Shown in pieces: positions 26,920 to 54,686 of a stretch of 64,000 nt of DNA (the first letter of the stretch is position 1; the number at the start of each line of letters is the position of its first letter). The position numbers and the translations under genes are program-made. The notes under the pieces were generated by a model. The model was not told the origin of the DNA, did no database searches, and was given only the letters and a program-made list of their open reading frames with translations. The stretch covers positions 1-64,000 of the IMG/VR virus record IMGVR_UViG_3300011113_000805, one strand, 5' to 3'.

Positions 26920-27974
26920 ACATCAATGTACTTCATTTGATGTACATTAGTGGATGTTCCCCAGGAGGGATCGGACTTCACGTTGGCTAGCCAGATGCTA
27001 TATGGGACAAGTTTCGATCCTCGATTTCCCCACACACGAAGCCAAGTCACCTGCATAGTTGTATCTGTCACCTTGAGGCGCATGAAGGGCTTACCATTCT
27101 TTGTCTGCTTCTCCTCCACCTGAAGGACACAGAACCAGCAGACATCCTCACCACCAGAAGAAAGCTCAGCAATAGGTGGAAGTTCTGCCTGCCGAATACG
27201 GGCCATGATCTCATCAGGAAAGATAATGTGATGGGGTGCTGAACCTGAAGTCTCCACCTGTTGTTGAACTTTTTGTGTCCGATCCCAGTCATCAATGTGC
27301 CTGACAGTCTCGATGAGTTCCAGGAGAATCGGTGGCGCATTGGCCTTTGCCGCCTTTCGCGGGTTCATGCCCCACCGACCCTTCTTCAGGGTGCCGTAGT
27401 TGCCGATGATAATCTCATGAAGTTGTCGATGATTAAGAAGGCGACCGTCCTGAAACTCTTCCAATGTTCCAAAGGCCTCCATAAAGAGGAGTGATTCGAG
27501 GCAGCTCCTATTCACCTTTGTGTGCCTCCACTTACCTTCAGAATCAAAGAGAAGCTCATCCAGGTTTCGATAGGGCCTATTCTCAAGGATTTCGGAGACA
27601 GCCGTGTCACCAACTCGCTTTAGAGATGAGAGCGGAGGAACGAATGCCTGTAAATCATTGGACCAGCTCCAGACATCACCAGAAGTATTGATGTCTGGTG
27701 GTGAGATTTTGTAGCCCATTTGCTTGATCTCTGAGACTACCACAGAGAGACCTTCAACATTTCCACTTTCTGACTGCAGGCAGGTTGCAAGCCAATCAGT
27801 TTCATAGTGTGTCATTAGCCATGCACCATAATAGGAGTCAATGGCATATGCAACCGAGTGAGAATTTGAAGTCAAAAGGCCGTTTGCAAGATAAAACTGG
27901 TGATCCGGATGATCCACTTCAAGGTCATAGGTCTGGTGTTCGCCGATGCTCTTGTAGGACTTAACTTTTGCCAT
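26916..27974 (-). CDS. dnaE: DNA polymerase III alpha C-terminal part fused to a split C-intein (27864-27974)
   Basis: MAKVKSYKSIGEHQTYDLEV...ANGLLTSN|SHSVAYA; PPDINTS, LKRVGD, OB-fold TKNGKPFM. Confidence 0.9.
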   Translation of the reverse strand: MAKVKSYKSIGEHQTYDLEVDHPDHQFYLANGLLTSNSHSVAYAIDSYYGAWLMTHYETDWLATCLQSESGNVEGLSVVVSEIKQMGYKISPPDINTSGDVWSWSNDLQAFVPPLSSLKRVGDTAVSEILENRPYRNLDELLFDSEGKWRHTKVNRSCLESLLFMEAFGTLEEFQDGRLLNHRQLHEIIIGNYGTLKKGRWGMNPRKAAKANAPPILLELIETVRHIDDWDRTQKVQQQVETSGSAPHHIIFPDEIMARIRQAELPPIAELSSGGEDVCWFCVLQVEEKQTKNGKPFMRLKVTDTTMQVTWLRVWGNRGSKLVPYSIWLANVKSDPSWGTSTNVHQMKYIDV

Positions 27975-28929
27975 AATCTTCACCTATAAGAATAAGCCCT
28001 GTTGATTTTTCAGTAAGGGCACTTAGAATTTGTGTAATACAGGATTCTTTGAATTTGCCCTTTTGAAATTCTGAGTGAGAAACCCTAATTACGGTATACC
28101 CTTTCTTTGTCAAGGCTTCATTTAATATTAAATCAGACCGCCTTATGTTTTCAAGTTTCTCAGCTCCGAATATTGGCAAAAAGTGAACAGGACCATCAAA
28201 TTCTACCACCACCTTCAACAGCGGATCCATGATATCGATTTGTCGTCTCTTCGAAATCGTGTTAAACGATACATCAAATATTCTTTGATTTTTACGAAAC
28301 CCAACATGATGTTTGCTAAGCATGTCAAATAAGGCTTTTTCAGGATAGCTTTGCTTAACAGCATGCATTCTCATAGTGCATTTCGAATAAAATTCTTCAG
28401 GATTGGAAGATCTCCACTTTGCAAGTGCAATTGTTCTTGCATGAAGAATTTCAGGTTTGTTTGAAGTAACTCTTGCTACACGTGATGATCTTTCACGACT
28501 TTTTTCACTCCTATTAAGATTGGACAAATTTTCACTTCTTGCCTTAATGGCACTAGGTGACCTTCGAATGCCTGATGATTTTGCTTCACCATGGCCGGCC
28601 CCATTTATTTTCCCAGCACTACTGTACTTTTTAACACATTCGTCTGCTGCAATTTGACCAGTATAGTCTTTCTTGGTAATGCCATGAGATTTTCTTAGGT
28701 GACGAGTTAAGATTCGAAACTTTTCTCCGCATATAAGGCAGACAACAAAATCCTTTCCTTCAGTTAGAGAAATACATTTCTCGCATGAAAGAACATGTGA
28801 CCAGAATATTGAGTTTTCCCTTAGGAAAGATCTTCCGCAGTCACAACAATTTCCAAGTCTTCCTGAATGATTTTCCAGATTGGAAGCATCTGACCGCAAG
28901 TTGTCCTGAATTTGTGATCCATCGTGCAT
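27961..28929 (-). mobile_element. Vsr-like/DUF559 homing endonuclease between the dnaE split-intein halves
   Basis: Zinc finger CLICG...HLRKSH; IDIMD...VVEFDGPVH...D...GYTVIRV; overlaps both dnaE parts out of frame. Confidence 0.8.
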
Positions 28930-31742
28930 CGAACTTTTTCTCCTGTATCAAGCTCAAACTCGTGCAGCTCTAAGACACCATGGTCATGCTTTGCACGAAC
29001 CTGAACAAACAAGTCTTTTCCTGTTGATTCTTCACGAGACTTAACAAAGCAACCTGGGGTGATGTCCTTGAGCATCAAAGTTTCAATAAACTCACCATTA
29101 TGTGAATACGTATGTACCTCTTCCTCAAAGTGACAAGTTTTATTGAAGCCATAAAGTGAGAAGTACGCGATGGTATCAAAGAGGTCCTGGGCTTGCTTTG
29201 GTGTCAATCCGGATTTCTCAATACAGCCGGAGACAAACTTCTTCTCCAGTGCCTCCTTCTCCTCAGACTTCTTACCAAGTGAGGTAAGATCTTTCTTCAC
29301 CAGAGTCTTTCGCATCTTGTCAGAGTCACCAGGTGAGAAACCTGCGAGTTTCTGAGCAAGTACCATGAATTGTTCCTGGAACACAATAAAGCCGCATGTG
29401 GGGCCCAGGACTTCTTCGATAACAGGATGATCGTACTTGATGGCATCTCGATTCTGCTTTGCCTCCACATATTTTTTGTGCACATTGGCTTTCAAAGGAC
29501 CGGGGCGATAGATCGCCGTAATGGTGGAGAGGTCGATAATATTCTCAGGCTTTGCTGCCACACAGAACTTTCGAGCTCCATCTGATGTGAACTGGAAGAT
29601 GCCTGACCAACGACCCTCCTGATAGACATGCCTGAAGACTTTTGAATCATTAGGCTCCACATAGCGACAATTGAGCTTCTGATCATAGAAGTCTTTTACT
29701 TCGACAAAGGTGGGATCTCGACCAAGCTCTCGGAGGAGGATTCGACGAATGCAGTCCTCCACCATTTGCATTTGCTTCAGGCCCAAGAAATCAAACTTCA
29801 GAAAGCCGTTCTCTTCCAAGTTTCGAATATTGACACCTTCGGTCCACGGTGTCTGGAGTTCTCCCTTTACCGTGATGAGAGGCATGTGCTTCTCAAGTTC
29901 TGGGCAGATGAGGACGCCGCCAGCATGTCGACCAACAGATCGATTCATCATGAAGAGTGATCGCACCTTGTCTTGTACCTGAGGATACTTCTCCATAAAC
30001 TCACGGTATCGAGGTGAGTGCTCCATACAGTCCTCGTGCTTCAGAACAAACATGGACTTCTCCATGTTAGGATCACGGGATTTCTCGGCAACCTCACGTT
30101 CAAGGGGTCCGGTGACGGCATTGACTTCATCGAAGGGAACACCGTAGAACTTGGAGACATCTTTTACCAGTGACTTCAGCTTCAGGGTATTGAAGTTGGA
30201 GACCGGCACCACTGATTCCTCACCGAAGATCTCACGTGCCGCCTCAATGAGCTTATCACGATCACCGACATCAGTGTCAATATCTGGCCAAGATGCCTTC
30301 TGCCGAGAGAGAAACCGCTCCCAGAGGAGATCATACTTAATAGGATCCACGTGTGTGATACCAAGGAGATAGTTCACAAGGGAGCCTGCGCCACTTCCGC
30401 GGCCGGCGCCTGGAAGGGTCCTGTTCTCGGCGACCTTAAAGACTTTCTCCAAGGTAAGAAAGTAGTCCTCAAACTTGAGGAACTTGATATCACCAAGCTC
30501 CATTTTTGCACGTTCGATATAGACAGGATCCTTGTGGAGTCCTTCCTCAATGAGTCGCTCCTTCACGATCTGTGTCAATTGACTCATCCCGGTCTGCTCA
30601 GGTGTGTTGAACTTTGGAAGCTTTGCGCTACCATCAAACCATACCTGCTGACATTGCTCCCAAACAATATCGTGTGACCGCTCGATGGCATCTCGGACTC
30701 TCTCCTCGTTGCCACGGTAGAAGCTATTGTCCGGGATAAGGCTCACGAACTCGTCCCAGATCTCATTCGCATTCTTCGGATAAAGCTCAGCCTTCAGATC
30801 TGTCCTCAGTGGGAGGACAGGTGCTGTGCCATCATTCTTGATGCGACCGGGCTGAAGCTGACGATAGATCTCACGAGACTCCCAGAAGTCCGGACCTGGG
30901 TAGTGCGAGTCTGAAGTAACGATGAGTGGGACGCCAGTCTTCTGTGAAGCATCTAGAAGAAACCGATTCGTAAGATTCTGGGCAGGAAGCTTGTTGAACT
31001 GTAGCTCTAGGAAGAAATTATCGCGACCAACAGCATCAGTAAAGCGATCCACCATATTTCCAAGACGTCCCAGGATACGATTACGACCAGCTACTCCTGC
31101 GACATCATAGAGATCAGGTGTCAGCTCGGAGAACTTCTTGTCAGGAAACTCTCGAAAGATATTTCCAGAGGCGAAACCGCCTACACAGGCCGTGCTGACA
31201 ATAAGGCCGCGACCATGTTCCCGAAGCATCTGAAAGTCGATTCGAGGAAACTTATAGAAACCCTCACGGAAAGATCGCTTCACCAGTGTAAAGAGATTTG
31301 CCAGGCCCTCATTGTCACGTGCCACCACCACTATGTGGTAGCGTCGATTAATGTTATCAACAACATCGGAGGATCGAGTCTCATCGGCATCCTCCACCAC
31401 AAGGCGACCATTGCCGTCCTCGTCAACAAGGGACTCCTCCTCCTGGCTCATTCCTGACTTGGAGAGGGCATATGCCTTTCGCCACTCATTGAGATCCGGA
31501 ACAAAGTAGAACTCAACACCAAAGAGCTGTCGAAAGTGCTTTCCTTTGGTGATGAGCTTTTTTGCGTGAGCATGAGCATGAGCAAGACCATTGCCATTGC
31601 CATGATCTGTCAGGGTCCAAGAGTCAAGTCCATTGGAGATACTGAAGTCGATGTGATCGGAGGGCTGCCCAAATCCATCGTAAGGTGAAAAATGGCTATG
31701 ACCATGAATGGAGGCATATCGACGAGGAGGTTGGATGATCAT
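28821..31742 (-). CDS. dnaE: DNA polymerase III alpha N-terminal part fused to a split N-intein (about 28821-29138)
   Basis: PHP HGHSHFS..DG/TDHG, GRGSGAGSL, PDIDTD, KFDFLGL, YGFNK, then a Hint N-half with CTMDHKF. Confidence 0.93.
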   Translation of the reverse strand: MIIQPPRRYASIHGHSHFSPYDGFGQPSDHIDFSISNGLDSWTLTDHGNGNGLAHAHAHAKKLITKGKHFRQLFGVEFYFVPDLNEWRKAYALSKSGMSQEEESLVDEDGNGRLVVEDADETRSSDVVDNINRRYHIVVVARDNEGLANLFTLVKRSFREGFYKFPRIDFQMLREHGRGLIVSTACVGGFASGNIFREFPDKKFSELTPDLYDVAGVAGRNRILGRLGNMVDRFTDAVGRDNFFLELQFNKLPAQNLTNRFLLDASQKTGVPLIVTSDSHYPGPDFWESREIYRQLQPGRIKNDGTAPVLPLRTDLKAELYPKNANEIWDEFVSLIPDNSFYRGNEERVRDAIERSHDIVWEQCQQVWFDGSAKLPKFNTPEQTGMSQLTQIVKERLIEEGLHKDPVYIERAKMELGDIKFLKFEDYFLTLEKVFKVAENRTLPGAGRGSGAGSLVNYLLGITHVDPIKYDLLWERFLSRQKASWPDIDTDVGDRDKLIEAAREIFGEESVVPVSNFNTLKLKSLVKDVSKFYGVPFDEVNAVTGPLEREVAEKSRDPNMEKSMFVLKHEDCMEHSPRYREFMEKYPQVQDKVRSLFMMNRSVGRHAGGVLICPELEKHMPLITVKGELQTPWTEGVNIRNLEENGFLKFDFLGLKQMQMVEDCIRRILLRELGRDPTFVEVKDFYDQKLNCRYVEPNDSKVFRHVYQEGRWSGIFQFTSDGARKFCVAAKPENIIDLSTITAIYRPGPLKANVHKKYVEAKQNRDAIKYDHPVIEEVLGPTCGFIVFQEQFMVLAQKLAGFSPGDSDKMRKTLVKKDLTSLGKKSEEKEALEKKFVSGCIEKSGLTPKQAQDLFDTIAYFSLYGFNKTCHFEEEVHTYSHNGEFIETLMLKDITPGCFVKSREESTGKDLFVQVRAKHDHGVLELHEFELDTGEKVRCTMDHKFRTTCGQMLPIWKIIQEDLEIVVTAEDLS

Positions 31743-43887: not shown

Positions 43888-44673
43888 TTAAGAGTTCGAA
43901 TCAATATTGGCTCGAATTTGACGAATAACCTCGGGTGTCTCGTCATGATGGCTCACTTCGAAACCGGTACCATTGGCGGCCAGAAGTTCATAGATCTCTC
44001 GGTCATTGCCATCACCTCTGCAGCGGTCACCTACAAACCACACGGTGTGGCCACGAAGTCGATGCATAACGAAAGTCTTGTTCCAACCCTGTGGGAAGAT
44101 GTCAAATGATGTGTCACCTCCCAGCTTCACATCGATCTCTTCACCGTAGCTCGTGAAGAGCTGCCGCAGTTGGACTAGTGCTTCCTGTCGCCACCCGGTC
44201 CTAATGTCAAATTGGCGGAAAGCTTCACGCTCCTCACTTCCGGACTCCCTTCCCACCGGACACCAGTTGAGCATTGACTCACGATAAGAGATAAAGTTGC
44301 CGGTGACTTGCAGTGGATGCTGTTGCATAAAGTTACGCTGCAAAGCGAGGAGATCAAACACCATTCGCCTATAGGTGTCGACACCTATCTCCTCACGCAT
44401 TGAGTAAAGTGGATCCATTCGACGCCAGCACTTTTGCCAGTCACGAATCCAGTGCTGTGTCCCATTGCAAGGAAAAACTTCAAGACCCTCCTCAAAGAGC
44501 TCATCAGGAACCTGTTGCTTCACATAGTCAAGGCCGGAACCTGTGAGAATTCCAACCCTTGTCTTTCCTGGTGCCAAGAGATCTTCAAGGAGAGAGTTGA
44601 CATTCTCCTTGGTCATTGAGCCACGTGCAGGTGTCAGTGTGCCATCTAGATCGAAGAGAACAATATGACGCAT
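43888..44673 (-). CDS. Eukaryote-type phosphomannomutase (HAD)
   Basis: LFDLDGTLTPAR, TGS, FISYR.SMLN.CPVGR, GGDTSFDIFP.GWNK, GD....GND.EI. Confidence 0.88.
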   Translation of the reverse strand: MRHIVLFDLDGTLTPARGSMTKENVNSLLEDLLAPGKTRVGILTGSGLDYVKQQVPDELFEEGLEVFPCNGTQHWIRDWQKCWRRMDPLYSMREEIGVDTYRRMVFDLLALQRNFMQQHPLQVTGNFISYRESMLNWCPVGRESGSEEREAFRQFDIRTGWRQEALVQLRQLFTSYGEEIDVKLGGDTSFDIFPQGWNKTFVMHRLRGHTVWFVGDRCRGDGNDREIYELLAANGTGFEVSHHDETPEVIRQIRANIDSNS

Positions 44674-44722
44674 TTGGAACTTGAGACCTTAATCACACAC
44701 TTGTGACTGTTGGATGAACAGG

Positions 44723-45190
44723 TTAACGATAATTGCTCCACTTATGGCGGGGATCATCAGGACCCCGAAGTCCCACGGTATCCCACGGATCAGGTTTCAT
44801 AGGGTTCCATGGTTCCCTTGGTGGCACACCATACAAGGCCTCTCTCCGCTTTTCTTCCTCCCGATCCGCAGCATTCCTGGCTTCCCATTCTTTGTTAGCC
44901 TTTCGAGTTGCAGCAGTCTTTGACTTAATCGCAGCAATTTCATCAGGTGATTTCAAACTCCTTTGATACTTTTGATTAGCAGATCTGAATTTAGAGATAG
45001 CTGCAGGACCAAAGAAAGACTGATCAATATCAGCGTACTTTAGTTCTCCTGATAAAATGCTGTCACACATTTCATTAACGAGACTAGCGATTCTAGAATT
45101 AAAATCATTGCTAGCATCAACAGACTCGTGAATCATGCCATCAATTTCTTCTTTGACTATCCTGCGCAATTGGCTCTCAGTAAGTTTCAT
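44723..45190 (-). CDS. Hypothetical protein, putative virion-internal
   Basis: Start MKLTESQLRRIVKEEI at 45190 (SD GGAG, ATATGTA upstream). Confidence 0.65.
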   Translation of the reverse strand: MKLTESQLRRIVKEEIDGMIHESVDASNDFNSRIASLVNEMCDSILSGELKYADIDQSFFGPAAISKFRSANQKYQRSLKSPDEIAAIKSKTAATRKANKEWEARNAADREEEKRREALYGVPPREPWNPMKPDPWDTVGLRGPDDPRHKWSNYR

Positions 45191-45227
45191 TTTGTGTCTC
45201 CACGCTGAATGATCATACATATTAATG

Positions 45228-45866
45228 TTAAAAACCAAAAGCCTCAATCGTGTGCTGGAAAGGTGAGCCCGGTATCTCGCGGACTTGTCGCAACATCTCT
45301 TCCGCAAGCCAGCAGATCTCCCGCTGAGCATCAGGTTTCATTCGAAGGCCCAAGAAGTGATTGAACGATCGCCAGTTGAACATAATATCCATAGTGATCT
45401 GATTTCCGTATGGAAGGTAGAAGCGTGCCGTCTCCTTTGCTCGCTTACGACTCATTCCACCATCCACCAACCGCTTCAGGGTCTCGTGGTACTTTTGGAT
45501 TGCATCTTCCATAAAAGTGGCATACCTCTCCTGCTCATCTGCCGGCCAGTCAGGAGGAATGTAGTACTTGTTATCCTTGAGCTCTTTATAGCGAGCTGAC
45601 TCTGCATTGACTGAGAGACCAATCCTGTGCTTCAGAAGCTGAATATGAGTTGCTGCATCCACAGTCACCAGAAAATGAAGGGCAGATTTTTCGAAAACGG
45701 TGTGATGTCCCTGGTCAGCAAGCATTTTCAGGAGCTGGGGGATCCGTTGTCTCTTTTCATCGGTGAGATCTCTTGAGGTTGATGTCCATGCTGAGAGTGC
45801 ATGTGTCTCATCAGAACCATACCAGCCTGTAAGCTGGACACGGTTGGCGCCTATTGTTTCTAACAT
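45228..45866 (-). CDS. thyX: Flavin-dependent thymidylate synthase
   Basis: GHHTVFE, QLLKHRIG....ESARY, KETARFYLP, NWRSFNHFLGLR...AQREI. Confidence 0.92.
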   Translation of the reverse strand: MLETIGANRVQLTGWYGSDETHALSAWTSTSRDLTDEKRQRIPQLLKMLADQGHHTVFEKSALHFLVTVDAATHIQLLKHRIGLSVNAESARYKELKDNKYYIPPDWPADEQERYATFMEDAIQKYHETLKRLVDGGMSRKRAKETARFYLPYGNQITMDIMFNWRSFNHFLGLRMKPDAQREICWLAEEMLRQVREIPGSPFQHTIEAFGF

Positions 45867-45868
45867 GA

Positions 45869-46471
45869 TTAGTCCAGTGTGTACTTGAGATCAATCTTGC
45901 ATGTGAGTGTTGGAAGACGAAGCTCATTAGCCAGCCCATGAGACTTTGCTTCGATCGCATCTAGATACCAGTCAGCATGCCCACGCTCATGAACAAGCTT
46001 CAGAAAGTAATCAGATGGCTTGCCGCAGTTTCGTGCCATCATCTCATAGACCTTCTTGTTGAGTCGATCGGCCTCACGTGAGTCAGCCTTAAGCTCCTCA
46101 ACCTTTCCAATAGCACCAGAGGAAACATCATGAATCATAAGGGTTGCATCCGGATCCATGAATCGCATGCCTTCGGCACCAAAGGAGAAAAGGATGGCAC
46201 CACAGGACATTGCTTTGCCTTCTACAATGGTAGCAACAGGTACCCGTGAAGATCGAATAGAGGCAATCATGGACATTAGGGAATAAACCTGGCCACCATA
46301 AGAATCGATAACAACTGGAATAACTGACTGACCAGTGTTCTGGGCCATGCTCATTTGCGAAGTGAACTCCTTTGCTGACTCTTCATCAAACTTGTTAACA
46401 CGAATGATGATTGGATCGACCTTGAGTTCAACTGCCTTGATCTGTGGTGCAATGTCTGCAATAAAGTTCAT
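45869..46471 (-). CDS. clpP: ClpP-family protease
   Basis: IDSYGG, GKAMSCG, LMIHD, D.YLDA.EA...GL; start at ATG 46471. Confidence 0.85.
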   Translation of the reverse strand: MNFIADIAPQIKAVELKVDPIIIRVNKFDEESAKEFTSQMSMAQNTGQSVIPVVIDSYGGQVYSLMSMIASIRSSRVPVATIVEGKAMSCGAILFSFGAEGMRFMDPDATLMIHDVSSGAIGKVEELKADSREADRLNKKVYEMMARNCGKPSDYFLKLVHERGHADWYLDAIEAKSHGLANELRLPTLTCKIDLKYTLD

Positions 46472-46529
46472 GTTATATCCTGCTTGTGTTAGGTTGTTGA
46501 TTACCTGCTCTTGCACATCTTCTTCGTAG

Positions 46530-47531
46530 CTACTTGCAACGACTCCACCCGCAAGAGGAACACGATAGGCATCCCTCTTGGTAGATGAGATCTCCGTTGC
46601 CACACTCCGGACATCCCTTTTCACTTGACTTAGTGCCATCCTTAATATACCCCTTGAGAACCCTAGCAATTACCTTTGCAAATGAGAACATATCACTGTT
46701 TTTATCCTTTTGCAGCTGCTCAACGACGTAATGAATTGGAACATTGTGACGTAAAGCAAGTGAGATTGTTCGCGTGAATGCACCCTGTGTTGAATTGTCG
46801 AAAAGTGTGACAATATCCTTGAAGACTAGATTGTCATCATCACCGACTGGAACGAGGAGATTGTATGTAGTAACTCCTTCACGCTTACCATTTTTAACCA
46901 ATGTGCCTGACTTGTATCGCTTTGGAATCTCAATATTTTCAGGAATGCCACAAAATACCTCGTAGGGCTTCCCCTCATTGAGTCCCACCAGAATGAGCCA
47001 AGATGTTCCTCCAATATTTGCTCTATGAATATCGCACTCTAGGGTCTTTGGCCTCTTTGGTGTGAGACGACCGTCAGCAAGGGGTTTTGGCTGGACTGTC
47101 TTGGGCTCTTCAGACTGCACTAAGACACCGGTTCTGCAACCGTCACGATAGACCGTAAATCCCTTGCACCCAGACTTCCATGCCTGAAGATAGACGTCAT
47201 TAACGGTCTCACGAGTCGCTGAGTTGGGGAGGTTGCAATTATGAACCGTAAAACCATTTGCTGAAAATGAATTCCCATCAGGAACTGTTAAATCATAAGT
47301 TCTTTCATTTCCTAGCATTTCAATTGAAAGAATCTCATCGAAATCATCGGCTGTTTTGGATTCATCAAGCCATCGCTTAAGCGTCCAATATCCGGGATTT
47401 TTAATATCTGATTCATTCAGATGCGCGGTAAGTAATAAAAATTTTGCCGCTTCCTGTTTGTTTACTCGAAATTCACGAGGAATTCGAACTTCTGCATTCT
47501 TACAGATAACTTCTACAGCCAAGTCTTGCAT
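46530..47531 (-). CDS. nrdJ: Class II RNR C-terminal part fused to a split C-intein (47238-47531)
   Basis: TYDLTV...SANGFTVHN|CNLP...GCKGFTVYRDG; PYEVF domain; terminal CPECG...EGC..C..CGWSRC. Confidence 0.9.
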   Translation of the reverse strand: MQDLAVEVICKNAEVRIPREFRVNKQEAAKFLLLTAHLNESDIKNPGYWTLKRWLDESKTADDFDEILSIEMLGNERTYDLTVPDGNSFSANGFTVHNCNLPNSATRETVNDVYLQAWKSGCKGFTVYRDGCRTGVLVQSEEPKTVQPKPLADGRLTPKRPKTLECDIHRANIGGTSWLILVGLNEGKPYEVFCGIPENIEIPKRYKSGTLVKNGKREGVTTYNLLVPVGDDDNLVFKDIVTLFDNSTQGAFTRTISLALRHNVPIHYVVEQLQKDKNSDMFSFAKVIARVLKGYIKDGTKSSEKGCPECGNGDLIYQEGCLSCSSCGWSRCK

Positions 47532-48574
47532 TATAACCTTCCCAGTATTTTAAGCAGATCTTCATTAAAGATCTCGGTTTCAGTAAGAACATGAAAGTTT
47601 TGGCCAAGAACATCTCTTGCTGCCGAAATTTTCAAGGCATTAACATGCTCACACACTTTTTTAAGTGGCTTTATTTCTAGAACAATTGTACTACCTATAG
47701 CATTGACAAATGCTATATCAGGATAGTAGTGCCTTCTTGAATTGCTTATCATATACTGAATTCTTTCAGGTGTTATTACTCTTTGAATTCTACATTGTCC
47801 AAGAAGATTGTCTAAAGCTTCAAAAACTTTTTTCTCCCATGATGATCTATAAAAAAACTTATCGTTTTCCTGATTGTTCATTCTATACCACCCCTTCTCA
47901 GAGTTCTTATATCCATTCTTATCAGATTCTAAAGAAGATCTAGAGAACCTATTTGATAGATACTCACTATAAAGTGAGTCTATTGCGTCAGGAGTAAGTT
48001 CATCAATATTTTTAATGTGCATATGCAATAGAATGTGCTTCATTTTCCAAGCATGAGTATTCTTCACTCTAAAGTTTTTGTAAGCTTCTTTAGTAATCTG
48101 CTTTCTCTTGTTGTCAGAGAAATTTTTGCTATATGCAATTCCAAGCATTGAACATGCTGATTTAAGAACCCTTTCCTTGTCAGCCAACTTTATTGCATCA
48201 TGATTGCCATATTTTTTAAGCCTTCCTATTGCTATCTTTTCTGAGTGGTTTGATAGATTTTTGAATTCGCGTGCCCATAATTCTAACACATCACTATCAC
48301 ATAATCCATCGAAAGGAATGTCATGTGATATCAAAAAGTTTTTTGCACGTGTTATTTTGCTTGATTTACCATTCCTAGAAAAATCACCTGTTTCTCTTAT
48401 CTTTCTGATTCTTAATGTGTCACCATGCATTCTTCTGTTATGATAATCAGGTGTTGCCTTAAAACATTTTAATGAACAGCAGCCATGCTTCATACTAACA
48501 GATTTCGAAATTATACTGTCCATTTGATCGACAATTTTATTGCAAACTTTGCATTCGAATGTTGTTCTAGGCAC
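47531..48574 (-). mobile_element. TnsA-like PD-(D/E)xK endonuclease between the nrdJ split-intein halves
   Basis: CxxC..CSLKC; YRSSWE...I.Y....RHYYPD......LEIKP; AT-rich. Confidence 0.75.
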
Positions 48575-48615
48575 TTTCTACTCCACAGGATCTACATATG
48601 CCATGGAGTAGAAAG
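48574..48615 (-). promoter_or_regulatory. RBS-sequestering hairpin with an ATAnnTA motif in the loop
   Basis: 12-bp stem 48574-48585/48604-48615 covers the SD GGAG and the first base of GTG; CATATGTA in the loop. Confidence 0.75.
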
Positions 48616-48618
48616 AAA

Positions 48619-51120
48619 TTATGATAACTTAACTCTGTCACCGATATTAATGTCCTTTAATTCTGCCCATGCCTCAAGACCATCATCATCGTTAAGCAAA
48701 ATAAACTTATGATCTAGTGTTGTTTTGATGCTTAATCCGGATTTTGTGGTCACACGATAAACCGGCTTAACACCTTGATCTGAGACAAATCCAATCATTG
48801 CTAAACGGCCATGATGATTAACCGTCATGAGGTCACTAACAGTTGCCGAACTTTCAGATTGACAGTTAGAAAGCTCGGCAATTTCATCGGCATAAAGCAA
48901 CCCACTATCTGTTTCAACAAGAGAATCACCTGATACACAAGTTTTAGAAATTGAGTGATCAACCCATCGCTGGGCAGCCGCTTGAATCTTTACCGAATTT
49001 ACCCAGTCAATGTCATTTGCAGTTGCACCCCAATATGGACTTTCCTGAGGATCTGACTTACCCGTGATATCCATCCACTTTTTGAACCAATGATGATAGA
49101 CAGTATATTCCTGCCACTTATCACCCATTGGATCCACAAAATCAACTCGGGATGTGATATCACCCTGCGTGATCTTTCGACGACGTTTATAGGAGAGCAG
49201 GAATGCTGGTTCAATTCCGGATGTTGTCTGGGTTAGGATGGAAACAGATCCTACAGGTGCTGTGGTTGTGAGGGCAATATTACGACGACCCGATGTGCGC
49301 CACATCTCGAGGGCACCTGGTGACTCAGTCTCGACTACCTGCATAATCTTGCCAAGGTAGCTATGTCCTTTCTCTTTCTCCCAGTCCCAGACAGGGAAAG
49401 CACCACGCTCGTGTGCCATCACTAGTGAGGAGTAGTGAGACCAGGTGGCCAGTGATTTGTAGATCTTCTCAGTAACCGCAATAGACTCCTCTGAGCCATA
49501 CCGAAGTCCTAGTGCTGCCAGGGCATCACCAAGGCCCGTGATCCCAAGTCCTGTCCTGCGACCATTGCTACCGGCAGCACGAATCTTCTCCCAGAGATCC
49601 TGTTCAATCTGCTTCACATGCTTGGGCTGTGGATCGTTCTTGATTTTCTCCAGAATGCGATCGACACACTCGACCTCAAGATCAACAAGGTCATCCATTA
49701 GGCGCTGTGCATCCTGAGTGACAGTTGCAAACTCATCAAAATTGAAACTTGCATTTGGCGTAAATGGGTTTCGAATGAATGAGGTGAGATTGATCACCAT
49801 CAGGCGGCAAGAGTCATATGGGCTGAGCGGGATTTCTCCACAATTGTGAACCAGAATATCATTTGCAAAGAAATTATGTACATCATCAACGGTTAGATCA
49901 TAAACATCTTCATTTTTTACCGCTGAGATGTCTTGAATTTCATCCCATTCTGTATTAATTTTGAGAATTTTATCACTAGTTTGAAGCTCGCCCGCCTCAA
50001 TCCAGCCTCTCTGTGTAAAAACTCTGTGATCAGGAGTTAGCTTAATTGATTTACCACTCTTTGTGGTAAGTTGCAGAATTTTTGCATCTTCCTTTGTTTT
50101 GAAAGCAGTCGCTGTTTTCTGTACAACCTTATTTTCCTTAATGTCATATGCACAAACCATAAACTGTGCATTATTATCTGCAAGTTCTTTAACAGTCTTT
50201 GGTCCTGCATTTGTTTTTACAACTGTGTCACCGGTGACACACGGATTCGTTGAGATTGTCTTGTATCCGACATCCCTATAGCAATCGACAATGCCTTCAT
50301 TGACCACCGTATCCCAGAAAAGAGCTCCAGGTTCAGCAGATGCCCAGGCAGCATCAATAAACTTCTCCCAAACTTGCCTTGCATTGACCACGCGTGTAAT
50401 CTCAGCATCTTCAGGAGCTGCCTCTACGGGCCATCGAAGAGTAAAGTCCTCGCCCTTCTCAACCGCCCGCATAAACTCATCAGTAAATCTGATTGAGATA
50501 TTTGCACCGGTAACTTTCTTAAGGTCACGCTTGATGTCAATAAATGTTTCAAGCTCAGGATGATTACAATGAACGGTTAGCATCAGGGCCCCACGCCGGC
50601 CGCCTTGAGCAACTTCCCGTGTAGAGTTGGAGAAGCGCTCCATAAAGACACCGATACCATCAGTCGTCCGGGCCGCATTGGTTGTTGGTTGTCCCTTTGG
50701 ACGAATGGTGGAGATGTCAAAGCCAACGCCTCCGCGGCGCTTCATAATCTGCACCTGTTCCTGATCGCTGAAGAGGATGCCGCCGTAGGAGTCGTGAGGC
50801 TGATCAATAACAAAACAGTTGGAAAGTGACTGAAGCTGATGAGGATTGCCAATTCCTGACATTGGCGATCCCTGAGGGACTACTTGGGCAAATCCCGTGA
50901 GGAGACTCAGGATTCTTTCCTCACTGAGTGGGTTTGGATACTTTGCCTCGATCCTCGCAAACTCCTTTGCAAGCCGTGTATGTAGCTGCCCAGGATCGGT
51001 CTCTAGCAAGTCACCCTGATGATTCCTGAGAGCGTACTTCAGAAAGACATCCGGTGCAAGCTCATCACCGCCAAAGGCCTCACGAAGGTGTTCAAGAACG
51101 CTTTGATTTTTGTTACTCAT
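48619..51120 (-). CDS. nrdJ: Class II RNR N-terminal part with a cis mini-intein and a split N-intein (48619-48939)
   Basis: SLSNCFV, GGVG, RRGALM, EPGA, TNP|C..HN|CGE, RRTGLG, APVGS, SISKT|CVSGD...TTLDHKF. Confidence 0.93.
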   Translation of the reverse strand: MSNKNQSVLEHLREAFGGDELAPDVFLKYALRNHQGDLLETDPGQLHTRLAKEFARIEAKYPNPLSEERILSLLTGFAQVVPQGSPMSGIGNPHQLQSLSNCFVIDQPHDSYGGILFSDQEQVQIMKRRGGVGFDISTIRPKGQPTTNAARTTDGIGVFMERFSNSTREVAQGGRRGALMLTVHCNHPELETFIDIKRDLKKVTGANISIRFTDEFMRAVEKGEDFTLRWPVEAAPEDAEITRVVNARQVWEKFIDAAWASAEPGALFWDTVVNEGIVDCYRDVGYKTISTNPCVTGDTVVKTNAGPKTVKELADNNAQFMVCAYDIKENKVVQKTATAFKTKEDAKILQLTTKSGKSIKLTPDHRVFTQRGWIEAGELQTSDKILKINTEWDEIQDISAVKNEDVYDLTVDDVHNFFANDILVHNCGEIPLSPYDSCRLMVINLTSFIRNPFTPNASFNFDEFATVTQDAQRLMDDLVDLEVECVDRILEKIKNDPQPKHVKQIEQDLWEKIRAAGSNGRRTGLGITGLGDALAALGLRYGSEESIAVTEKIYKSLATWSHYSSLVMAHERGAFPVWDWEKEKGHSYLGKIMQVVETESPGALEMWRTSGRRNIALTTTAPVGSVSILTQTTSGIEPAFLLSYKRRRKITQGDITSRVDFVDPMGDKWQEYTVYHHWFKKWMDITGKSDPQESPYWGATANDIDWVNSVKIQAAAQRWVDHSISKTCVSGDSLVETDSGLLYADEIAELSNCQSESSATVSDLMTVNHHGRLAMIGFVSDQGVKPVYRVTTKSGLSIKTTLDHKFILLNDDDGLEAWAELKDINIGDRVKLS
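49843..50241 (-). mobile_element. Cis mini-intein (133 aa, no endonuclease) at the RNR active-site NPCGE
   Basis: CVTGDT...TPDH...VYDLTV..HNFFAN..VHN|C. Confidence 0.92.
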
Positions 51121-51121
51121 G

Positions 51122-52507
51122 TCACTTTGCTCCCATAACTTGTTTCCACTTCTCTCGCAGGACATTCTTCCTGCTATTGTCATCCTGGGTTATTGCTTCC
51201 TGTAAGGTGAGCTCACCCTCATCTAGAACTTTAATGGTAGAACGAGCCGTGTCAATGTGAATAGGAAAAAGAATGCCATCACGTCCTGCTCGATTCTTTG
51301 CTACAAAAAGCCTTCCCATTCCTGTGGCCTTTTCGGCAGGCTTTCGGGAGAGAGAGAGGACCACGTCAGCCACCATTGCCTTGCCATAGGACTCTGACAT
51401 ATTCTCAAGGCCAACAATGTCAGAATTTGAGGAGTCACGATTTGCCTGGGATGCCGTCCAGATGGGAATGTTTTTCTCCATTGCCAGGTTTCGAAGCTCC
51501 TCATAAATAAGCTTAAGCTCAAGTCTTAGGGCATCATACTCTCGCGATGATCGCATAATATCAGCATAGTCGATGAGAATCAGATTAGGAACAAATCCTC
51601 TCAACGAGAGCTTCTCGAGGTGATTTCGAAGGGTATTGACAGTTGCCGTGCCTGTAGGATACTCCTTGATGATGAGCTTGCCTAGCTCCATATCCTTGTA
51701 CTTGTCCATTACCTCCTGCTTTGAGTCCTGGATCTCGTTGGACGGGATCTCAGTCAGGTGAGAGTCATAGCGAATGCCAACCGCTGTCTCAGTGAGCTCA
51801 AACGTATAATGAACAACATTCTTTCCTCGTTTCAGGGCGTTTGCTCCCAAGGAGACAAGCATATGGCTCTTGCCGACACCGGTATTTGCAGCAATAACCC
51901 CTAGCTCACCGCGACCAAGGCCTCCATTAAGGACTGTCTTCTCGTCAAGCTGATCAATACCGGTAGGACATGCAGCGCGATTGATCTTAACAAAACGAGC
52001 TTCAGCATCCTCAAAGAAGTCATGACCAACAGATGTGGGCAGGCCTACGGAGACTGCCTTGCGCATAAGATCAACGACGGCATCATACTTGTCACCTGAA
52101 ATAAGTTCGACAGATTTCTCAAGTGCCTCACGAAGGGCTTGCTTCCTGCAAAAATCAAGCGCCTTATCCTTCACATATGCAATGTCACCCATGTCAGGTG
52201 AGTGACGCATACGACCCAGGTACTCTACAATTTGCTCCTTAAGGACAGCATTGCTTGGCTCACGCAGCTCATCCTTGATGATGGAGATGAGCAAGGAGAG
52301 AGTCGGAAACGAGCGATACTTGCCATTGTACTTGAAGTACTTGTCACTGAGGTAAGCAAGGTATTTCAAGTCAAAGTAGTTTGGTTGCATCACCTCTGAC
52401 ATTTGTGCGGCCCAGGTATGATCGGTCAGGAGGCCCTGGAAGATCTTTTCCTGAAAGGGTTTGCCATACTGCTTGAATAACGCTTCACCGGGACTATTGT
52501 CAGACAT
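51122..52507 (-). CDS. DnaB/gp41-like replicative helicase
   Basis: ANTGVGKS, IIKEYP, IDYAD, WTASQANR, KNRAG. Confidence 0.92.
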   Translation of the reverse strand: MSDNSPGEALFKQYGKPFQEKIFQGLLTDHTWAAQMSEVMQPNYFDLKYLAYLSDKYFKYNGKYRSFPTLSLLISIIKDELREPSNAVLKEQIVEYLGRMRHSPDMGDIAYVKDKALDFCRKQALREALEKSVELISGDKYDAVVDLMRKAVSVGLPTSVGHDFFEDAEARFVKINRAACPTGIDQLDEKTVLNGGLGRGELGVIAANTGVGKSHMLVSLGANALKRGKNVVHYTFELTETAVGIRYDSHLTEIPSNEIQDSKQEVMDKYKDMELGKLIIKEYPTGTATVNTLRNHLEKLSLRGFVPNLILIDYADIMRSSREYDALRLELKLIYEELRNLAMEKNIPIWTASQANRDSSNSDIVGLENMSESYGKAMVADVVLSLSRKPAEKATGMGRLFVAKNRAGRDGILFPIHIDTARSTIKVLDEGELTLQEAITQDDNSRKNVLREKWKQVMGAK

Positions 52508-53462
52508 ACTTCCTCTTTAGATTTACTGTTGCGTTCATGTAGAGCCTGTCAATGTCGAATGTTTTAATTCCGGCCTTGAGAAGCGAGCGAATGAGCTCCA
52601 TCTTATTGCCGGCTGGAACTTCACTCTCGATGGCCGAGTTGATCCTTGTAACCTGGTTCCAGCTGAGATTTGAGACATCAAGGTGCATGAGCTTCCAATT
52701 CATTCTAGCCATGTCAGCACCGTTTTTCACTTGCTGGTATGTTTTTGCTGACTTTTCTGGCATTGAGATTGCATGCGTAATGATTTCTTCCAAGTCAATG
52801 GGACTATTACCGACAAGCTGCGGAAACCTCTTGGCCATAGTCTTCAGTCCTATGCCTTTAATCCCGGGGAGTGCATCAGAGACATCTCCGCAGAAGCATC
52901 GAGCAACAACCATATTGTAGGGTCGTATTCCAAATTTTTTTGTGACATACTCGTCATCGACTACGGCCTTGAGAGTGGGAGACCAAATTTTCACTCTTTC
53001 ATTCACTAGCTGTAAGTAATCATGATCAGAAGAAACTATCAGCACCGGTGACTGTGAGTAAGAATATTTTGCCAAATAGCCAATAACATCATCAGCTTCA
53101 CAATCTGAGACGTAGATCTGCCTAACAGGCAGATGCTTCAATGCCCCAACAAGGACTTTCACCTGCCAGTTTCGATTCTCTACAGTGTCTGGAAGGTCTC
53201 CTTCGTGAAAACGATTGAGCTTTACTGGGCGACGTCGCGACTTATACTCCGGATAGATAGCACGCCGCCGGGCCGAACCACCACCTTCCCAGACAATGAC
53301 ACACTCATAAGGTGAGTGCGTTGATATTAAAGAGTTCAATGACTGGAGGAACCCAACCACCCCACCGACGTGCTGACCCTCAGCCATCAGCGGATTTGCA
53401 CAAAAATTTCTTAGGTACAAGTTGTAGGCATCGATAAGGAGGACGGGTCCCTCGGTTGTCAT
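52500..53462 (-). CDS. 5'-3' exonuclease (second copy)
   Basis: LLIDAYN, YPEYK, EADDVIGY, SSDHDYLQL, GDVSDALPGIKGIG. Confidence 0.92.
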   Translation of the reverse strand: MTTEGPVLLIDAYNLYLRNFCANPLMAEGQHVGGVVGFLQSLNSLISTHSPYECVIVWEGGGSARRRAIYPEYKSRRRPVKLNRFHEGDLPDTVENRNWQVKVLVGALKHLPVRQIYVSDCEADDVIGYLAKYSYSQSPVLIVSSDHDYLQLVNERVKIWSPTLKAVVDDEYVTKKFGIRPYNMVVARCFCGDVSDALPGIKGIGLKTMAKRFPQLVGNSPIDLEEIITHAISMPEKSAKTYQQVKNGADMARMNWKLMHLDVSNLSWNQVTRINSAIESEVPAGNKMELIRSLLKAGIKTFDIDRLYMNATVNLKRKYV

Positions 53463-53468
53463 GAATTA

Positions 53469-54686
53469 TTACTCCGGAGAGATATCATAACCCGATTCTG
53501 TCAATTGATCAGCAAGTGATTTCACTTCTTCATAAGACTCACTATCAATATCAATGTCATCAGCCTGGATCTGAGTTTTAACCATTGCCTTTTCTAGAAG
53601 GCCCTCAATCCATGGACTCGCCTCCGGATCCTTCATGACATCACCGAAATCATTCTTGTAGAACTTTCGTGTGAGAATATTGACACCTTCTGAGTTCATT
53701 ACCGTGAGAGTCTTCCATGCACCGGCACCTTCAATGGAGACCTCATGATCATTGACCATGTCCTTGCCAAAGTTTCGAAGCAAGTCAAAGATCTCCTCAT
53801 GCTCAACGATTCCTTTGCCAAAGTGAATCTGGAAGTTGGCCGACCTGAAGGGTGGGCCCACCTTGTTCTTGATGGTCTTTGCCGAGACATTGATACCAAT
53901 AACAGCGTCATTGGCACCCTTCACTTGCTGGCCAGCACCAAGCTTGATTCGAACCGATGCATGAAATGGAATTGCATTTCCACCAGGAACTGCAGTCGGA
54001 TCTCCGTAAAGAACACCGATCTTTGTCCTCACCTGGTTCAGGCAAACAAAGAGAACCCTTTGATCGCCAATGAGACCAGTAATCTTTCGCATTGCCTTGG
54101 AGATGGTCCTCGCCTGGAGACCGATAGTATCCTTGTCATACGCACCCTCAAGCTCAGCCTTAGGTGAGGATGCCGCAACGGAGTCCCAGATGATGGTGAT
54201 GGGTGCATCCTTACTGAATGTCTTTGCCTTCAGAATAGTCTTCTCGGCGATATCAAAGACTTCCTCCGTACAATGTGTATCGACATAGACAAATCGCTTC
54301 GAGATATCAACACCAAGTGTCTGCAAGTTCTCTGGATTGGTTGCATTCTCCGTGTCAATATAGACTACAATTCCACCCATTCGCTGGGTAGATCTGGCAA
54401 TATGAGTTGCAATATGACTCTTGCCAATTGAGGGTGGGCCAAAGATTTCGATGATTCGACCCTCTGGAAGACCACCATCACGGCGGTTGGAGACGATGTA
54501 ATCAAGCTGCTTTGAACCTGTCGAGATCCAACGCTTCACGTGAGTCGGTGACTGATCTGATGCAAGATTATAAGCGACTCGGTGACCGATGTCTCGATTA
54601 AGTGAGTTAATGAGATCAGAAGTAAAATCCTCGGCTGCTGTGGTGCCGGCATCATTCGAGACTGTTGTTTTCTTCTTTGGTGGCAT
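53469..54686 (-). CDS. recA: RecA/UvsX recombinase
   Basis: STGS..LD, GLP.GRIIEIFGPPSIGKS, IDTE, DSVA, NQVR, GG.AI.F.AS.R, KNKV. Confidence 0.93.
   Translation of the reverse strand: MPPKKKTTVSNDAGTTAAEDFTSDLINSLNRDIGHRVAYNLASDQSPTHVKRWISTGSKQLDYIVSNRRDGGLPEGRIIEIFGPPSIGKSHIATHIARSTQRMGGIVVYIDTENATNPENLQTLGVDISKRFVYVDTHCTEEVFDIAEKTILKAKTFSKDAPITIIWDSVAASSPKAELEGAYDKDTIGLQARTISKAMRKITGLIGDQRVLFVCLNQVRTKIGVLYGDPTAVPGGNAIPFHASVRIKLGAGQQVKGANDAVIGINVSAKTIKNKVGPPFRSANFQIHFGKGIVEHEEIFDLLRNFGKDMVNDHEVSIEGAGAWKTLTVMNSEGVNILTRKFYKNDFGDVMKDPEASPWIEGLLEKAMVKTQIQADDIDIDSESYEEVKSLADQLTESGYDISPE

Follow-up and report, generated by a model that had tools for sequence, protein, structure and literature searches.

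A fractured nrdJ gene of a freshwater jumbo phage with a mini-intein, a split intein and a TnsA/T4 gp4-like nuclease as probable homing endonuclease

Introduction

How can a phage gene for ribonucleotide reductase (RNR) still yield its enzyme when it is broken into two ORFs, and what is the gene between them doing there? The question arises from a 64-kb window (the whole stretch of DNA analysed here) of a freshwater jumbo phage, in which translation places a free-standing ORF of 347 aa between the two ORFs of a minus-strand nrdJ. The arrangement itself is already known as the 'fractured gene' of Dassa, London, Stoddard, Schueler-Furman & Pietrokovski 2009 (PMC2677866), who described fractured NrdJ-1/-2, NrdA, gp41, IMPDH and DnaE loci; the endonucleases described in them are only of the GIY-YIG and Vsr-like types, and these loci were also reported to have a hairpin ahead of the endonuclease gene, whose ORF overlaps that of the C-intein (IntC) (PMC2677866). 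The nrdJ locus of the window has same-strand ORFs carrying the N-intein (IntN) and IntC, an endonuclease gene between them, a hairpin in the spacer and an ORF overlap, and it is a fractured gene, in our view probably with a free-standing homing endonuclease, from which NrdJ would be rebuilt by cis and trans protein splicing.

Results

Organisation of the locus

The features of the locus are as follows, with a slash marking splice junctions in the text.

51120..48622, minus strand: nrdJ ORF1; the start at 51120 is the most likely one, one base past the helicase stop
50242..51120, minus strand: NrdJ N-extein 1, 293 aa (aa 1-293, ending ISTNP), from translation and Pfam Ribonuc_red_lgC
49843..50241, minus strand: mini-intein, 133 aa, at TNP/CGE, running from C1 to VHN and followed by CGE, with a TPDH block B
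48940..49842, minus strand: NrdJ N-extein 2, 301 aa (CGEIPL...HSISKT), from translation
48622..48939, minus strand: IntN of the split intein, 106 aa, with Cys1 and a TLDH block B
48619-48621, minus strand: stop codon of ORF1, after IntN
48574..48615, minus strand: predicted RNA hairpin in the 44-nt spacer upstream of the nuclease start
47534..48574, minus strand: nuclease ORF (P0001), 347 aa, GTG start, from translation, with 32 homologue clusters
48464..48553, minus strand: four-Cys zinc-ribbon-like motif at the nuclease N-terminus (C8, C11, C33, C37), from alignment and the AF2 model
47555..47908, minus strand: TnsA/T4 gp4-like PD-(D/E)xK catalytic domain, aa about 223-340 (E247, D286, E300, K302)
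47531-47533, minus strand: nuclease stop codon, sharing one base with the IntC ATG (TAATG)
47531..46533, minus strand: ORF3, comprising IntC and the NrdJ C-extein
47238..47531, minus strand: IntC of the split intein, 98 aa, with canonical F/G blocks and ending VHN
46533..47237, minus strand: NrdJ C-extein, 235 aa, starting CNLPNSATRE, with a TSCPD domain and a C-terminal Cys-rich tail
46530-46532, minus strand: stop codon of ORF3

Every element of the layout given in a preliminary description of this DNA was reproduced on the minus strand, to the base. Coordinates and splicing residues agree on a mini-intein of exactly 133 aa at NP/CGE, the split intein that had been placed at SISKT/CNLP is present, with IntN following SISKT and IntC ending VHN/CNLP, and the YRSSWE, YYPD and EIKP motifs ascribed to the intervening gene all occur in it. 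The neighbouring genes comprise the nrdJ halves, DnaB, ClpP and ThyX. The nuclease ORF is out of frame with both nrdJ halves and has a foreign-looking composition, with a GC content of 0.33 where the flanks have about 0.45, and the sequence GGAAGG lies just 5' of the IntC ATG. The spacer hairpin has a predicted folding energy of -21.3 kcal/mol (z -2.4), and its 3' arm includes both the Shine-Dalgarno sequence GGAG and the initial G of the GTG codon at which the nuclease starts; hairpins of different sequence occupy the same position in other loci. By analogy with published fractured genes, the hairpin may regulate translation of the nuclease.

The dnaE gene in the window is also fractured, around a distinct, Vsr-like-looking ORF with a weak DUF559 match and a ROS/MucR zinc finger, in keeping with the earlier claim that the nrdJ nuclease differs in type from the one in dnaE.

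Exteins and inteins

Judged from its sequence, NrdJ is a class II ribonucleotide reductase with a barrel domain, the NPCGE Cys loop and a TSCPD domain, and in Pfam it matches Ribonuc_red_lgC (PF02867, E 3e-72) and PF12637 (E 3.4e-5, above its cut-off). The mini-intein (Pfam Intein_splicing, E 2.6e-25) carries no endonuclease domain, retains Cys1, the TPDH block B and the terminal VHN, and has as its closest solved relative the NrdJ-1 intein 8ubs (E 2.4e-15). The NPCGE motif provides its +1 residue, a Cys that we take to be the thiyl-radical Cys of the RNR. The mini-intein is precisely missing in the near-identical locus L138 and in contigs of two other runs (X2 and X3), all of which retain the fracture.

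The split intein has C1, the TLDH block B, the F/G blocks and VHN/C all in place. The IntC profile matches solved inteins (E 3e-9), with aa 65-98 forming the canonical F/G blocks and aa 1-58 a conserved three-helix extension of no recognised fold; its length of 98 aa is new for fractured genes. IntN and IntC are predicted to pair, with an ipSAE of 0.80 compared with 0.01 for the best of three controls, a mark that is reached by 51 of 78 solved complexes and by 2 of 108 mismatched pairs; the models share at least 96% of contacts between runs, and the partners have a pLDDT of at least 77. The preliminary description had argued that nrdJ needs both cis- and trans-splicing, and the intact splicing residues, the predicted pairing of the halves and the strong purifying selection described below all agree with this, so that two splicing events, one in cis and one in trans, appear to be needed for NrdJ assembly. 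Halves of the DnaE and NrdJ split inteins share about 35-37% identity over short stretches only, and it is plausible from these sequences that the two pairs are mutually orthogonal.

Classification of the nuclease

The ORF between the nrdJ halves consists of a zinc ribbon, in which C8, C11, C33 and C37 are nearly invariant, a helical region (aa 42-210) and a nuclease domain. Structure comparison finds TnsA (1t0f_A) as the best match (Z 10.8, rmsd 3.2, 130 aligned residues), followed by a next match at Z 7.5, and Foldseek also places TnsA first (E 2e-3, probability 1.0). By HMM, PHROG 218 ('head closure') matches aa 223-312 with E 3.8e-9. The family profile of the nuclease retrieves 2489 representatives; among 99 distant relatives PF08722 (Tn7_TnsA-like_N) is matched by 97, with a best E of 1e-20, and 27 carry NUMOD3 at the position of the zinc ribbon. 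Residues E247, D286, E300 and K302 are invariant in an alignment of 27 homologues, the YYPD and EIKP motifs align with YTPD and EYKP of a TnsA sequence, and RSSWE, YPD and EIKP are shared with small PF08722-matching ORFs of phages.

PF08722 has no match to the nuclease itself in Pfam even at E 10, and the NCBIfam model TnsA_like_Actin scores weakly (E 0.074, with 12.5 bits where the cut-off is 110), so membership in the family rests on fold and transitive homology. The HMM classification that the preliminary description had looked to is therefore borne out for PHROG 218 and, through relatives, for PF08722, but not by a direct PF08722 match, while its assignment of the gene to a TnsA/T4 gp4-like type holds on the fold match, the PHROG match and the relatives together. 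These observations support a TnsA/T4 gp4-like PD-(D/E)xK domain at the C-terminus. An EDxHD or Vsr-like class was considered and rejected: in the alignment of homologues, no His of the catalytic core is conserved, and the comparisons with I-Bth0305I (3r3p) and Vsr give Z 7.0 and 6.8 against 10.8 for TnsA. A Tn7-type TnsA transposase subunit was likewise rejected, as the TnsA C-terminal domain, TnsB/TnsC partners and a transposon context are all lacking. The N-terminal region has no match in Pfam to any recognised DNA-binding family; its helical part presumably serves in DNA recognition. Among the domain's distant relatives are many gp4-like ORFs, mostly of 140-150 aa, that lie in structural modules outside fractures, so the domain alone is not diagnostic of homing.

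Distribution and selection

Full-length homologues of the nuclease are 28-96% identical to it, and all those whose context was read (L002-L009, L032, L089, L091-L093, L138 and L140) lie between RNR-N+IntN and IntC+RNR-C at the same nrdJ site. The arrangement recurs in at least 13 independently assembled loci, and IntN, nuclease and IntC are bridged by contigs from two independent studies. In other phages (L005, L062, L066 and L084), a second nrdJ fracture at NP/C holds a related nuclease, whose catalytic domain is homologous (hhalign probability 95%, E 3e-8) and whose N-terminal region differs. About 70 related viral loci have an empty SKT/CNLP site with identical junction peptides, and in most close relatives the site is empty and the nuclease gene is absent there; no near-identical genome with an empty SKT/CNLP site was found, L138, L140, X2 and X3 all being fractured. 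The distribution of the fracture is patchy, with at least eight changes on the extein tree, at least six of them forced by starred branches. Identities in extein 2 and in the nuclease catalytic domain are 77% and 59% for L032, 61% and 54% for L089, and 43% and 37% for L003, so that cassette and extein drop together, and long vertical co-inheritance with losses fits this pattern as well as homing does.

All parts of the locus evolve under purifying selection, the exteins and intein halves strongly (dN/dS 0.03-0.07 for the exteins, with N-extein 2 at 0.03-0.04, 0.06-0.16 for IntN, 0-0.03 for IntC and 0.14-0.17 for the nuclease over all 347 codons). Two ORFs and an additional intein in one gene could suggest that nrdJ is a broken pseudogene whose pieces are never rejoined, but extein dN/dS values this low, exteins with 74-85% identity to uninterrupted viral NrdJ and no frameshift, intein halves that are predicted to pair and the retention of Cys1, TxxH, the terminal HN and the +1 Cys in both inteins make this very improbable. 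The window also derives from a metagenomic assembly, and a chimeric contig could in principle mimic a fracture; however, the X2 and X3 contigs, from two other studies, span 47110-49839 and 46400-49839 at about 96-97% identity, and the identical order is found in both L138 and L140 and in at least 11 loci that are more distantly related, which leaves such an artefact a negligible chance.

Discussion

The reading that we favour, a fractured gene with a homing endonuclease, would proceed as follows. The 133-aa mini-intein of the NrdJ-1 type would excise in cis and restore the NPCGE motif, whose Cys serves as its +1 nucleophile, and the 106-aa IntN would pair with the 98-aa IntC and trans-splice to restore HSISKT-CNLP, for a ligated NrdJ of about 829 aa. 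The endonuclease would be bipartite, with the zinc ribbon and helical region recognising DNA and the PD-(D/E)xK domain cutting it, and the hairpin would sequester its Shine-Dalgarno sequence and GTG start. Cleavage of the intein-less nrdJ of co-infecting relatives near the SKT/CNLP codons would be followed by repair that copies the IntN-nuclease-IntC cassette into the cut allele, and the split intein would render the insertion harmless to the host gene. We infer DNA cleavage, its target, homing and splicing activity from the features of the locus; the strict site association, the modular relatives at a second site, the empty alleles and the purifying selection strengthen the case for a homing role.

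The nuclease could instead be a resident phage enzyme, gp4-like and acting in head completion or packaging, or in the exclusion of host DNA or competitors, that became fixed in a broken intein. The best family match is PHROG 218, distant relatives are mostly short gp4-like ORFs in structural modules, the 257-kb record holds no second member of the family, and the cassette co-diverges with nrdJ, all of which would suit such an origin. Against it, close relatives with an empty site have no such gene at nrdJ, the N-terminal region of about 220 aa with its zinc ribbon and helices is restricted to the fracture clade, and a sister clade with another N-terminal region occupies the second nrdJ fracture. 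Such modular targeting is typical of homing endonucleases. In addition, the translational hairpin and the overlap of the ORFs are as in published fractured-gene endonucleases (PMC2677866), and we consider a resident enzyme unlikely. Still less likely is a decaying remnant, dead or unexpressed, whose ORF is kept for the IntC ribosome-binding site and start at its 3' end. The hairpin over the nuclease's own start, the GTG codon, the lack of a direct Pfam match and the apparent age of the cassette could be taken this way, but the constraint on the nuclease extends over its whole length, the catalytic tetrad and about 20 other positions do not vary even among homologues as distant as 27% identity, the ORF is unbroken and full-length at all loci read, and the AF2 model is confident (mean pLDDT 87).

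Compared with the loci of Dassa et al. 2009, the homing locus that we propose is alike in its hairpin spacer, the overlap of the endonuclease 3' end with IntC, phage origin and freshwater source (PMC2677866), and its mini-intein is the closest relative of their NrdJ-1 intein. The place of the fracture, the family of the nuclease and the length of the C-intein are new: in their NrdJ the break falls at the thiyl-Cys site, whereas in that of the window it falls about 300 residues downstream at SISKT/CNLP; their endonucleases are GIY-YIG or Vsr-like and ours TnsA/gp4-like; IntC has 98 aa against the usual 33-54; and the overlap with IntC is 1 nt against the published 6-69 (PMC2677866). We found no published report of a TnsA/T4 gp4-type nuclease in a fractured gene. 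The N-terminal domain of Tn7 TnsA (1f1z, 1t0f; PF08722) has the same restriction-endonuclease-like fold and E...PD...ExK layout, but the nrdJ nuclease has an N-terminal zinc ribbon and helical region and lacks the TnsA C-terminal domain. T4 gp4-type head completion proteins (PHROG 218) belong to the same nuclease domain family by HMM, yet they are single-domain proteins of about 140-150 aa encoded among structural genes, whereas the nuclease has about 220 additional N-terminal residues and a location inside nrdJ. I-Ssp6803I, from a cyanobacterial tRNA intron, is a small, oligomeric enzyme and is not known to have a DNA-binding module of its own. It provides a PD-(D/E)xK precedent as a homing endonuclease and, as far as its citation in PMC2677866 goes, is intron-encoded, unlike the free-standing nrdJ nuclease. 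The EDxHD/Vsr-like I-Bth0305I (PMC3239194) would share the ecological role, and shares the bipartite build and broad fold superfamily, but its catalytic residues are E, D, H and D, the His acting as general base (PMC3239194), whereas the nuclease has an invariant E, D and ExK. In Aeromonas phage Aeh1, nrdA is likewise an RNR large-subunit gene broken up by the gene of a free-standing endonuclease, mobE, and according to the account in PMC2677866 a hairpin over the ribosome-binding site of the latter limits its translation (Gibb & Edgell; PMC3045599). MobE, however, belongs to the HNH type, and there are no inteins, the halves assembling non-covalently. Set against these systems, it is an even bet that the TnsA/T4 gp4-like domain represents a further modular homing endonuclease family, with N-terminal modules that target at least two nrdJ sites and resident inteins broken into split inteins, and that the three-helix extension of IntC is a new accessory module packing on IntN.

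Anatomy of the fractured nrdJ gene

The window covers the first 64 kb of an IMG/VR virus record of 257 kb, whose estimated completeness is 76%, and its source is a jumbo phage whose gene set includes a DnaE-type polymerase, GroEL, GlmS, DnaB, ThyX and ClpP. The sequencing runs that contain the window sequence are mainly freshwater and mine-water metagenomes. Three ORFs lie between 51120 and 46533 on the minus strand, and they divide nrdJ into two pieces around a nuclease gene:

51120..48622, minus strand: ORF1, with NrdJ aa 1-293, a mini-intein, 301 extein aa ending HSISKT, and the N-terminal split-intein half (IntN)
50241..49843, minus strand: mini-intein of 133 aa, between TNP and CGE
48939..48622, minus strand: IntN, 106 aa, at the 3' end of ORF1
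48574..47534, minus strand: nuclease ORF, 347 aa, GTG start, separated from ORF1 by a 44-nt spacer
47531..46533, minus strand: ORF3, with the C-terminal split-intein half (IntC, 98 aa, ending VHN), then CNLP and onward, 235 extein aa with a TSCPD domain
47358-47531, minus strand: N-terminal extension of IntC, aa 1-58, under strong purifying selection

The preliminary description of this DNA had placed a 133-aa mini-intein between NP and CGE (site a) and a split intein between SISKT and CNLP (site b) around an intervening gene. Both placements are exact. Pfam recovers the RNR barrel at E 3e-72 and matches the intein pieces at E 2.6e-25, and a scan of the entire record with the intein model gave separate, weaker matches in the same places. 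Both nrdJ inteins retain Cys1, the TxxH block, the terminal HN and the +1 Cys. An Rfam scan of 44000-54000 gave no match and therefore no intron in that interval, and tRNA genes were not found within the window. Searched against the phage collection, the locus had no DNA match by megablast and just three weak gp4-like matches by tblastn.

Integrity and expression signals of the locus

Runs X2 and X3, which belong to two unrelated studies, have contigs that span IntN, the nuclease and IntC at ~96-97% identity, and in the likely source run one identical contig spans the whole locus. An NCBI assembly contig (L138) is near-identical to the window (98.7% and 94.8% on the two sides), and a further locus, L140, has the same gene order. 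Each extein, intein and nuclease segment was treated on its own in the searches, the dN/dS estimates and the tree. Against L138 and L140, dN/dS is 0.03-0.07 for the exteins, 0.16 and 0.06 for IntN, 0 and 0.03 for IntC, and 0.17 and 0.14 for the nuclease, respectively. The predicted pairing of IntN with IntC scores an ipSAE of 0.80 in three runs versus 0.01 for the best of three controls, a mark that 51 of 78 solved complexes attain but also 2 of 108 mismatched pairs, with contact agreement between the runs of at least 96% and partner pLDDT of at least 77; since split-intein complexes have already been solved, this model is a likeness rather than proof. Given the bridging contigs, the two related loci, the low dN/dS and the predicted pairing, we rejected the readings of the locus as a pseudogene or as an assembly artefact.

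A 17-bp hairpin with a single bulged base is predicted in the 44-nt spacer (-21.3 kcal/mol, z -2.4); its 3' arm includes GGAG and the first base of the nuclease GTG start, and most other folded loci have a hairpin of different sequence at the same position. At the other end, the nuclease stop overlaps the ATG of IntC (TAATG), with GGAAGG just before it. Spacer hairpins and ORF overlaps are known from fractured genes and from Aeh1 mobE, according to Dassa et al. (2009, PMC2677866). The GC content of the nuclease ORF is 0.33 versus ~0.45 around it. Contigs from a freshwater-sediment metatranscriptome (run X15), ~90% identical to the window, cover 47025-47906, 48030-48521, 48721-49146 and 49927-50192, spanning the nuclease/IntC junction, the nuclease, IntN and the mini-intein; they are not proof of transcription, because DNA carry-over is possible.

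The N-terminal extension of IntC, ~60 aa long, is common to the IntC halves of all the fractured site-b loci that were read, with R16, P18, R22 and L32 invariant. AF2 predicts it as three helices (pLDDT ~88 for aa 11-50), and the model of the complex has it in contact with IntN; a fold search with the three-helix model found no match (best Z 4.0), and sequence searches gave none either. By eye, RIPxExRxxKxxAxxFL resembled LAGLIDADG blocks D/E, and a remnant of that kind is unsupported by the fold search and by the PDB profile search with IntC, which returned only intein F/G-block matches and an insignificant I-MsoI match (E 3.8). BLAST also aligned IntC aa 26-64 with the block-B region of the mini-intein; this alignment probably just runs on from the strong C-terminal match and was given no weight.

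The intervening gene encodes a TnsA-N/T4 gp4-like nuclease

Pfam recognised no family in the nuclease itself, giving only Phage_endo_I at E 0.043, and the TnsA-like match in NCBIfam was weak (E 0.074). Residues 223-312 do match PHROG 218 ('head closure', T4 gp4 type; E 3.8e-9). In an alignment of 27 homologues (27-96% identity), E247, D286, E300 and K302 are invariant and fall in the motifs (F/Y)RSxWE, YYPD and ExKP, and an N-terminal four-Cys pattern is almost invariant. With the AF2 model (mean pLDDT 87), Foldseek returned Tn7 TnsA as the best solved match (E 2e-3, probability 1.0), and VIA-align scored TnsA at Z 10.8 (rmsd 3.2, 130 residues, model 199-338), followed by the next entry at 7.5, I-Bth0305I at 7.0 and Vsr at 6.8. 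A family profile search collected 2489 representative proteins, ~46 of them full length. Tn7_TnsA-like_N was matched by Pfam in 97 of 99 distant relatives (best E 1e-20), with NUMOD3 in 27 and DUF7487 in 28 of the same 99.

Because TnsA is the top fold match and nearly all of these relatives carry its N-terminal domain, the class proposed in the preliminary description, a TnsA-N/T4-gp4-like PD-(D/E)xK nuclease, is borne out by modelled fold and transitive homology, the direct HMM test being negative.

Distribution of the fracture among phage nrdJ genes

Every full-length homologue whose context was read (L002-L009, L032/L090, L089, L091-L093, L138 and L140, with identity down to 27%) is flanked by an RNR-N+IntN ORF on one side and an IntC+RNR-C ORF on the other, and the position in NrdJ is the same throughout. 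Where the C-extein begins CN(L/I)P the cut follows SKT, and where it begins T(T/I)NLP the cut falls one residue before that and the +1 residue is Thr: HSISKT precedes a +1 Cys in the window, L002, L007, L089 and L091, and HSISx precedes a +1 Thr in L003, L005, L008, L092 and L093. This one-codon shift in register between sub-lineages echoes the one-residue offset between NrdA and NrdJ noted by Dassa et al. (PMC2677866). The distant relatives sharing only the domain are mostly 140-150-aa gp4-like ORFs or ~320-aa NUMOD3+TnsA_N ORFs, and they sit in structural modules, outside fractures. One locus has a free-standing relative next to the same gene: a 155-aa single-domain TnsA_N nuclease (L129:4495-4962; PF08722, E 9e-17) lies 13 nt before an uninterrupted nrdJ begins.

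Among 79 viral loci with NrdJ C-exteins related to that of the window (identity up to 83%), site b is uninterrupted in all that reach the junction except L032, and the empty junction is mostly the same peptide, DHSISKT followed by CNLPNSAT(R/K)E. The tree built from extein segment 2 (88 rows; quick method, LG+G4) requires at least eight changes of the fractured state, at least six of them forced by starred branches, and none of 500 shuffles gave a count as low; the state is therefore clustered but patchy. This count is blind to gain versus loss, and different queries were used to gather the two sets of loci. The identities of the cassette (IntN, nuclease and IntC) and of the exteins fall in parallel, which points to an old, largely vertical association between the cassette and nrdJ.

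A second fractured site and its alleles

Site a, empty in most loci, is itself fractured in four (L062:3845-5106, L005:3808-4575, L066 and L084) by an ORF of 255-281 aa that carries YVWLRSSWE, YRPDFF and VEIKS motifs. This ORF shares a homologous catalytic domain with the window nuclease (hhalign probability 95%, E 3e-8), and its N-terminal region is unrelated; Pfam gave no match to this ORF, and a PDB profile search with the alignment of these nucleases gave nothing informative. In L005, nrdJ is in three pieces with both sites fractured, and the first ORF adds intein and LAGLIDADG domain matches. A single catalytic domain with two recognition modules at two nrdJ sites resembles the build of modular homing endonucleases.

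In L013 and L037 the same site holds a contiguous HNH-containing intein, and in L032, as in the window, it holds a mini-intein. That of the window, 399 nt long, is precisely missing from L138 (L138:3733) and from the X2 and X3 contigs, where the flanking exteins are 99.5-100% identical, and is thus a clean presence/absence polymorphism. Since it has no endonuclease of its own, its recent gain or loss must involve recombination with another allele. Among solved structures, the NrdJ-1 intein, from the fractured nrdJ of Dassa et al., comes nearest to this mini-intein (E 2.4e-15).

The dnaE fracture and other inteins

A second fractured gene of the window is dnaE:

26916-31742, minus strand: fractured dnaE, its DnaE-N part ending GFNKT
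29135..28824, minus strand: dnaE IntN, 104 aa
28929..27961, minus strand: middle ORF, 322 aa, overlapping both neighbours
27983..27864, minus strand: dnaE IntC, 40 aa, ending TSN before a +1 Ser, then DnaE-C

The middle ORF has a ROS/MucR zinc finger and a DUF559 match (E 1.4e-3) under that model's cut-off, and from its sequence it looks Vsr-like. The nrdJ nuclease family is distinct from the Vsr-like/EDxHD type, because no core histidine is conserved, and the earlier statement that the two fractures hold nucleases of different type therefore stands. The DnaE and NrdJ intein halves share only 35-37% identity over 26-35 residues. Natural split inteins so distant are usually orthogonal, the topic of PMC7090010, and these two pairs may plausibly be so as well.

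A fourth intein of the genome is contiguous and lies outside the window (G000:C1:88364-90076; L141:865-2577, minus strand). It is a large intein in a 570-aa ORF, with junctions LGE/CVPPGT and WTGN/CDHP and LAGLIDADG-type motifs by eye, and the ORF adjoins possible structural genes. Upstream of nrdJ in another locus (L002:1-2266), an ORF with NUMOD3 and REase_MTES_1575 is followed by an ORF in which a faint intein signal is fused to DnaB_C; the pair resembles a fractured dnaB helicase gene of the Vsr-like kind already published.

Implications and comparison with known fractured genes

We infer a role for the nuclease in homing. Few catalytic families of homing endonuclease are known, and if this role is true, a TnsA/gp4-type enzyme at one nrdJ codon position in very divergent phages would be an additional type, with the empty, fractured and one-codon-shifted alleles as a ready natural series of targets. 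It would tie selfish homing elements to transposon TnsA and to the small gp4-like nucleases that abound in phages. The locus also adds a natural split-intein pair, new and with an IntC of unusual length, the NrdJ and DnaE split inteins in one genome form a natural test of orthogonality, and the nrdJ alleles (empty, mini-intein, HNH-intein, fractured at either site) are snapshots for testing the model of split-intein origin.

The NrdJ of the window would need splicing both in cis and in trans, and Trichodesmium DnaE is a precedent for the two within a single protein. In the literature searched, the coverage of which was incomplete, no fractured gene is described with a TnsA-like nuclease, and surveys of intein-associated homing endonucleases to 2025 list only the GIY-YIG, Vsr-like/EDxHD, HNH, LAGLIDADG and endonuclease-VII-like types.

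In every architectural respect the locus conforms to the fractured genes described by Dassa et al. (2009, PMC2677866), whose DnaE-1 locus likewise contains part of an additional in-frame intein. Three differences separate the window from the published genes: their NrdJ loci break at the thiyl-Cys site, whereas that of the window does not; the IntC of the window is long, unlike those of their fractured genes; and their text, through which the nucleases were compared, names only GIY-YIG and Vsr-like enzymes, whereas the one in the window is TnsA/gp4-like.
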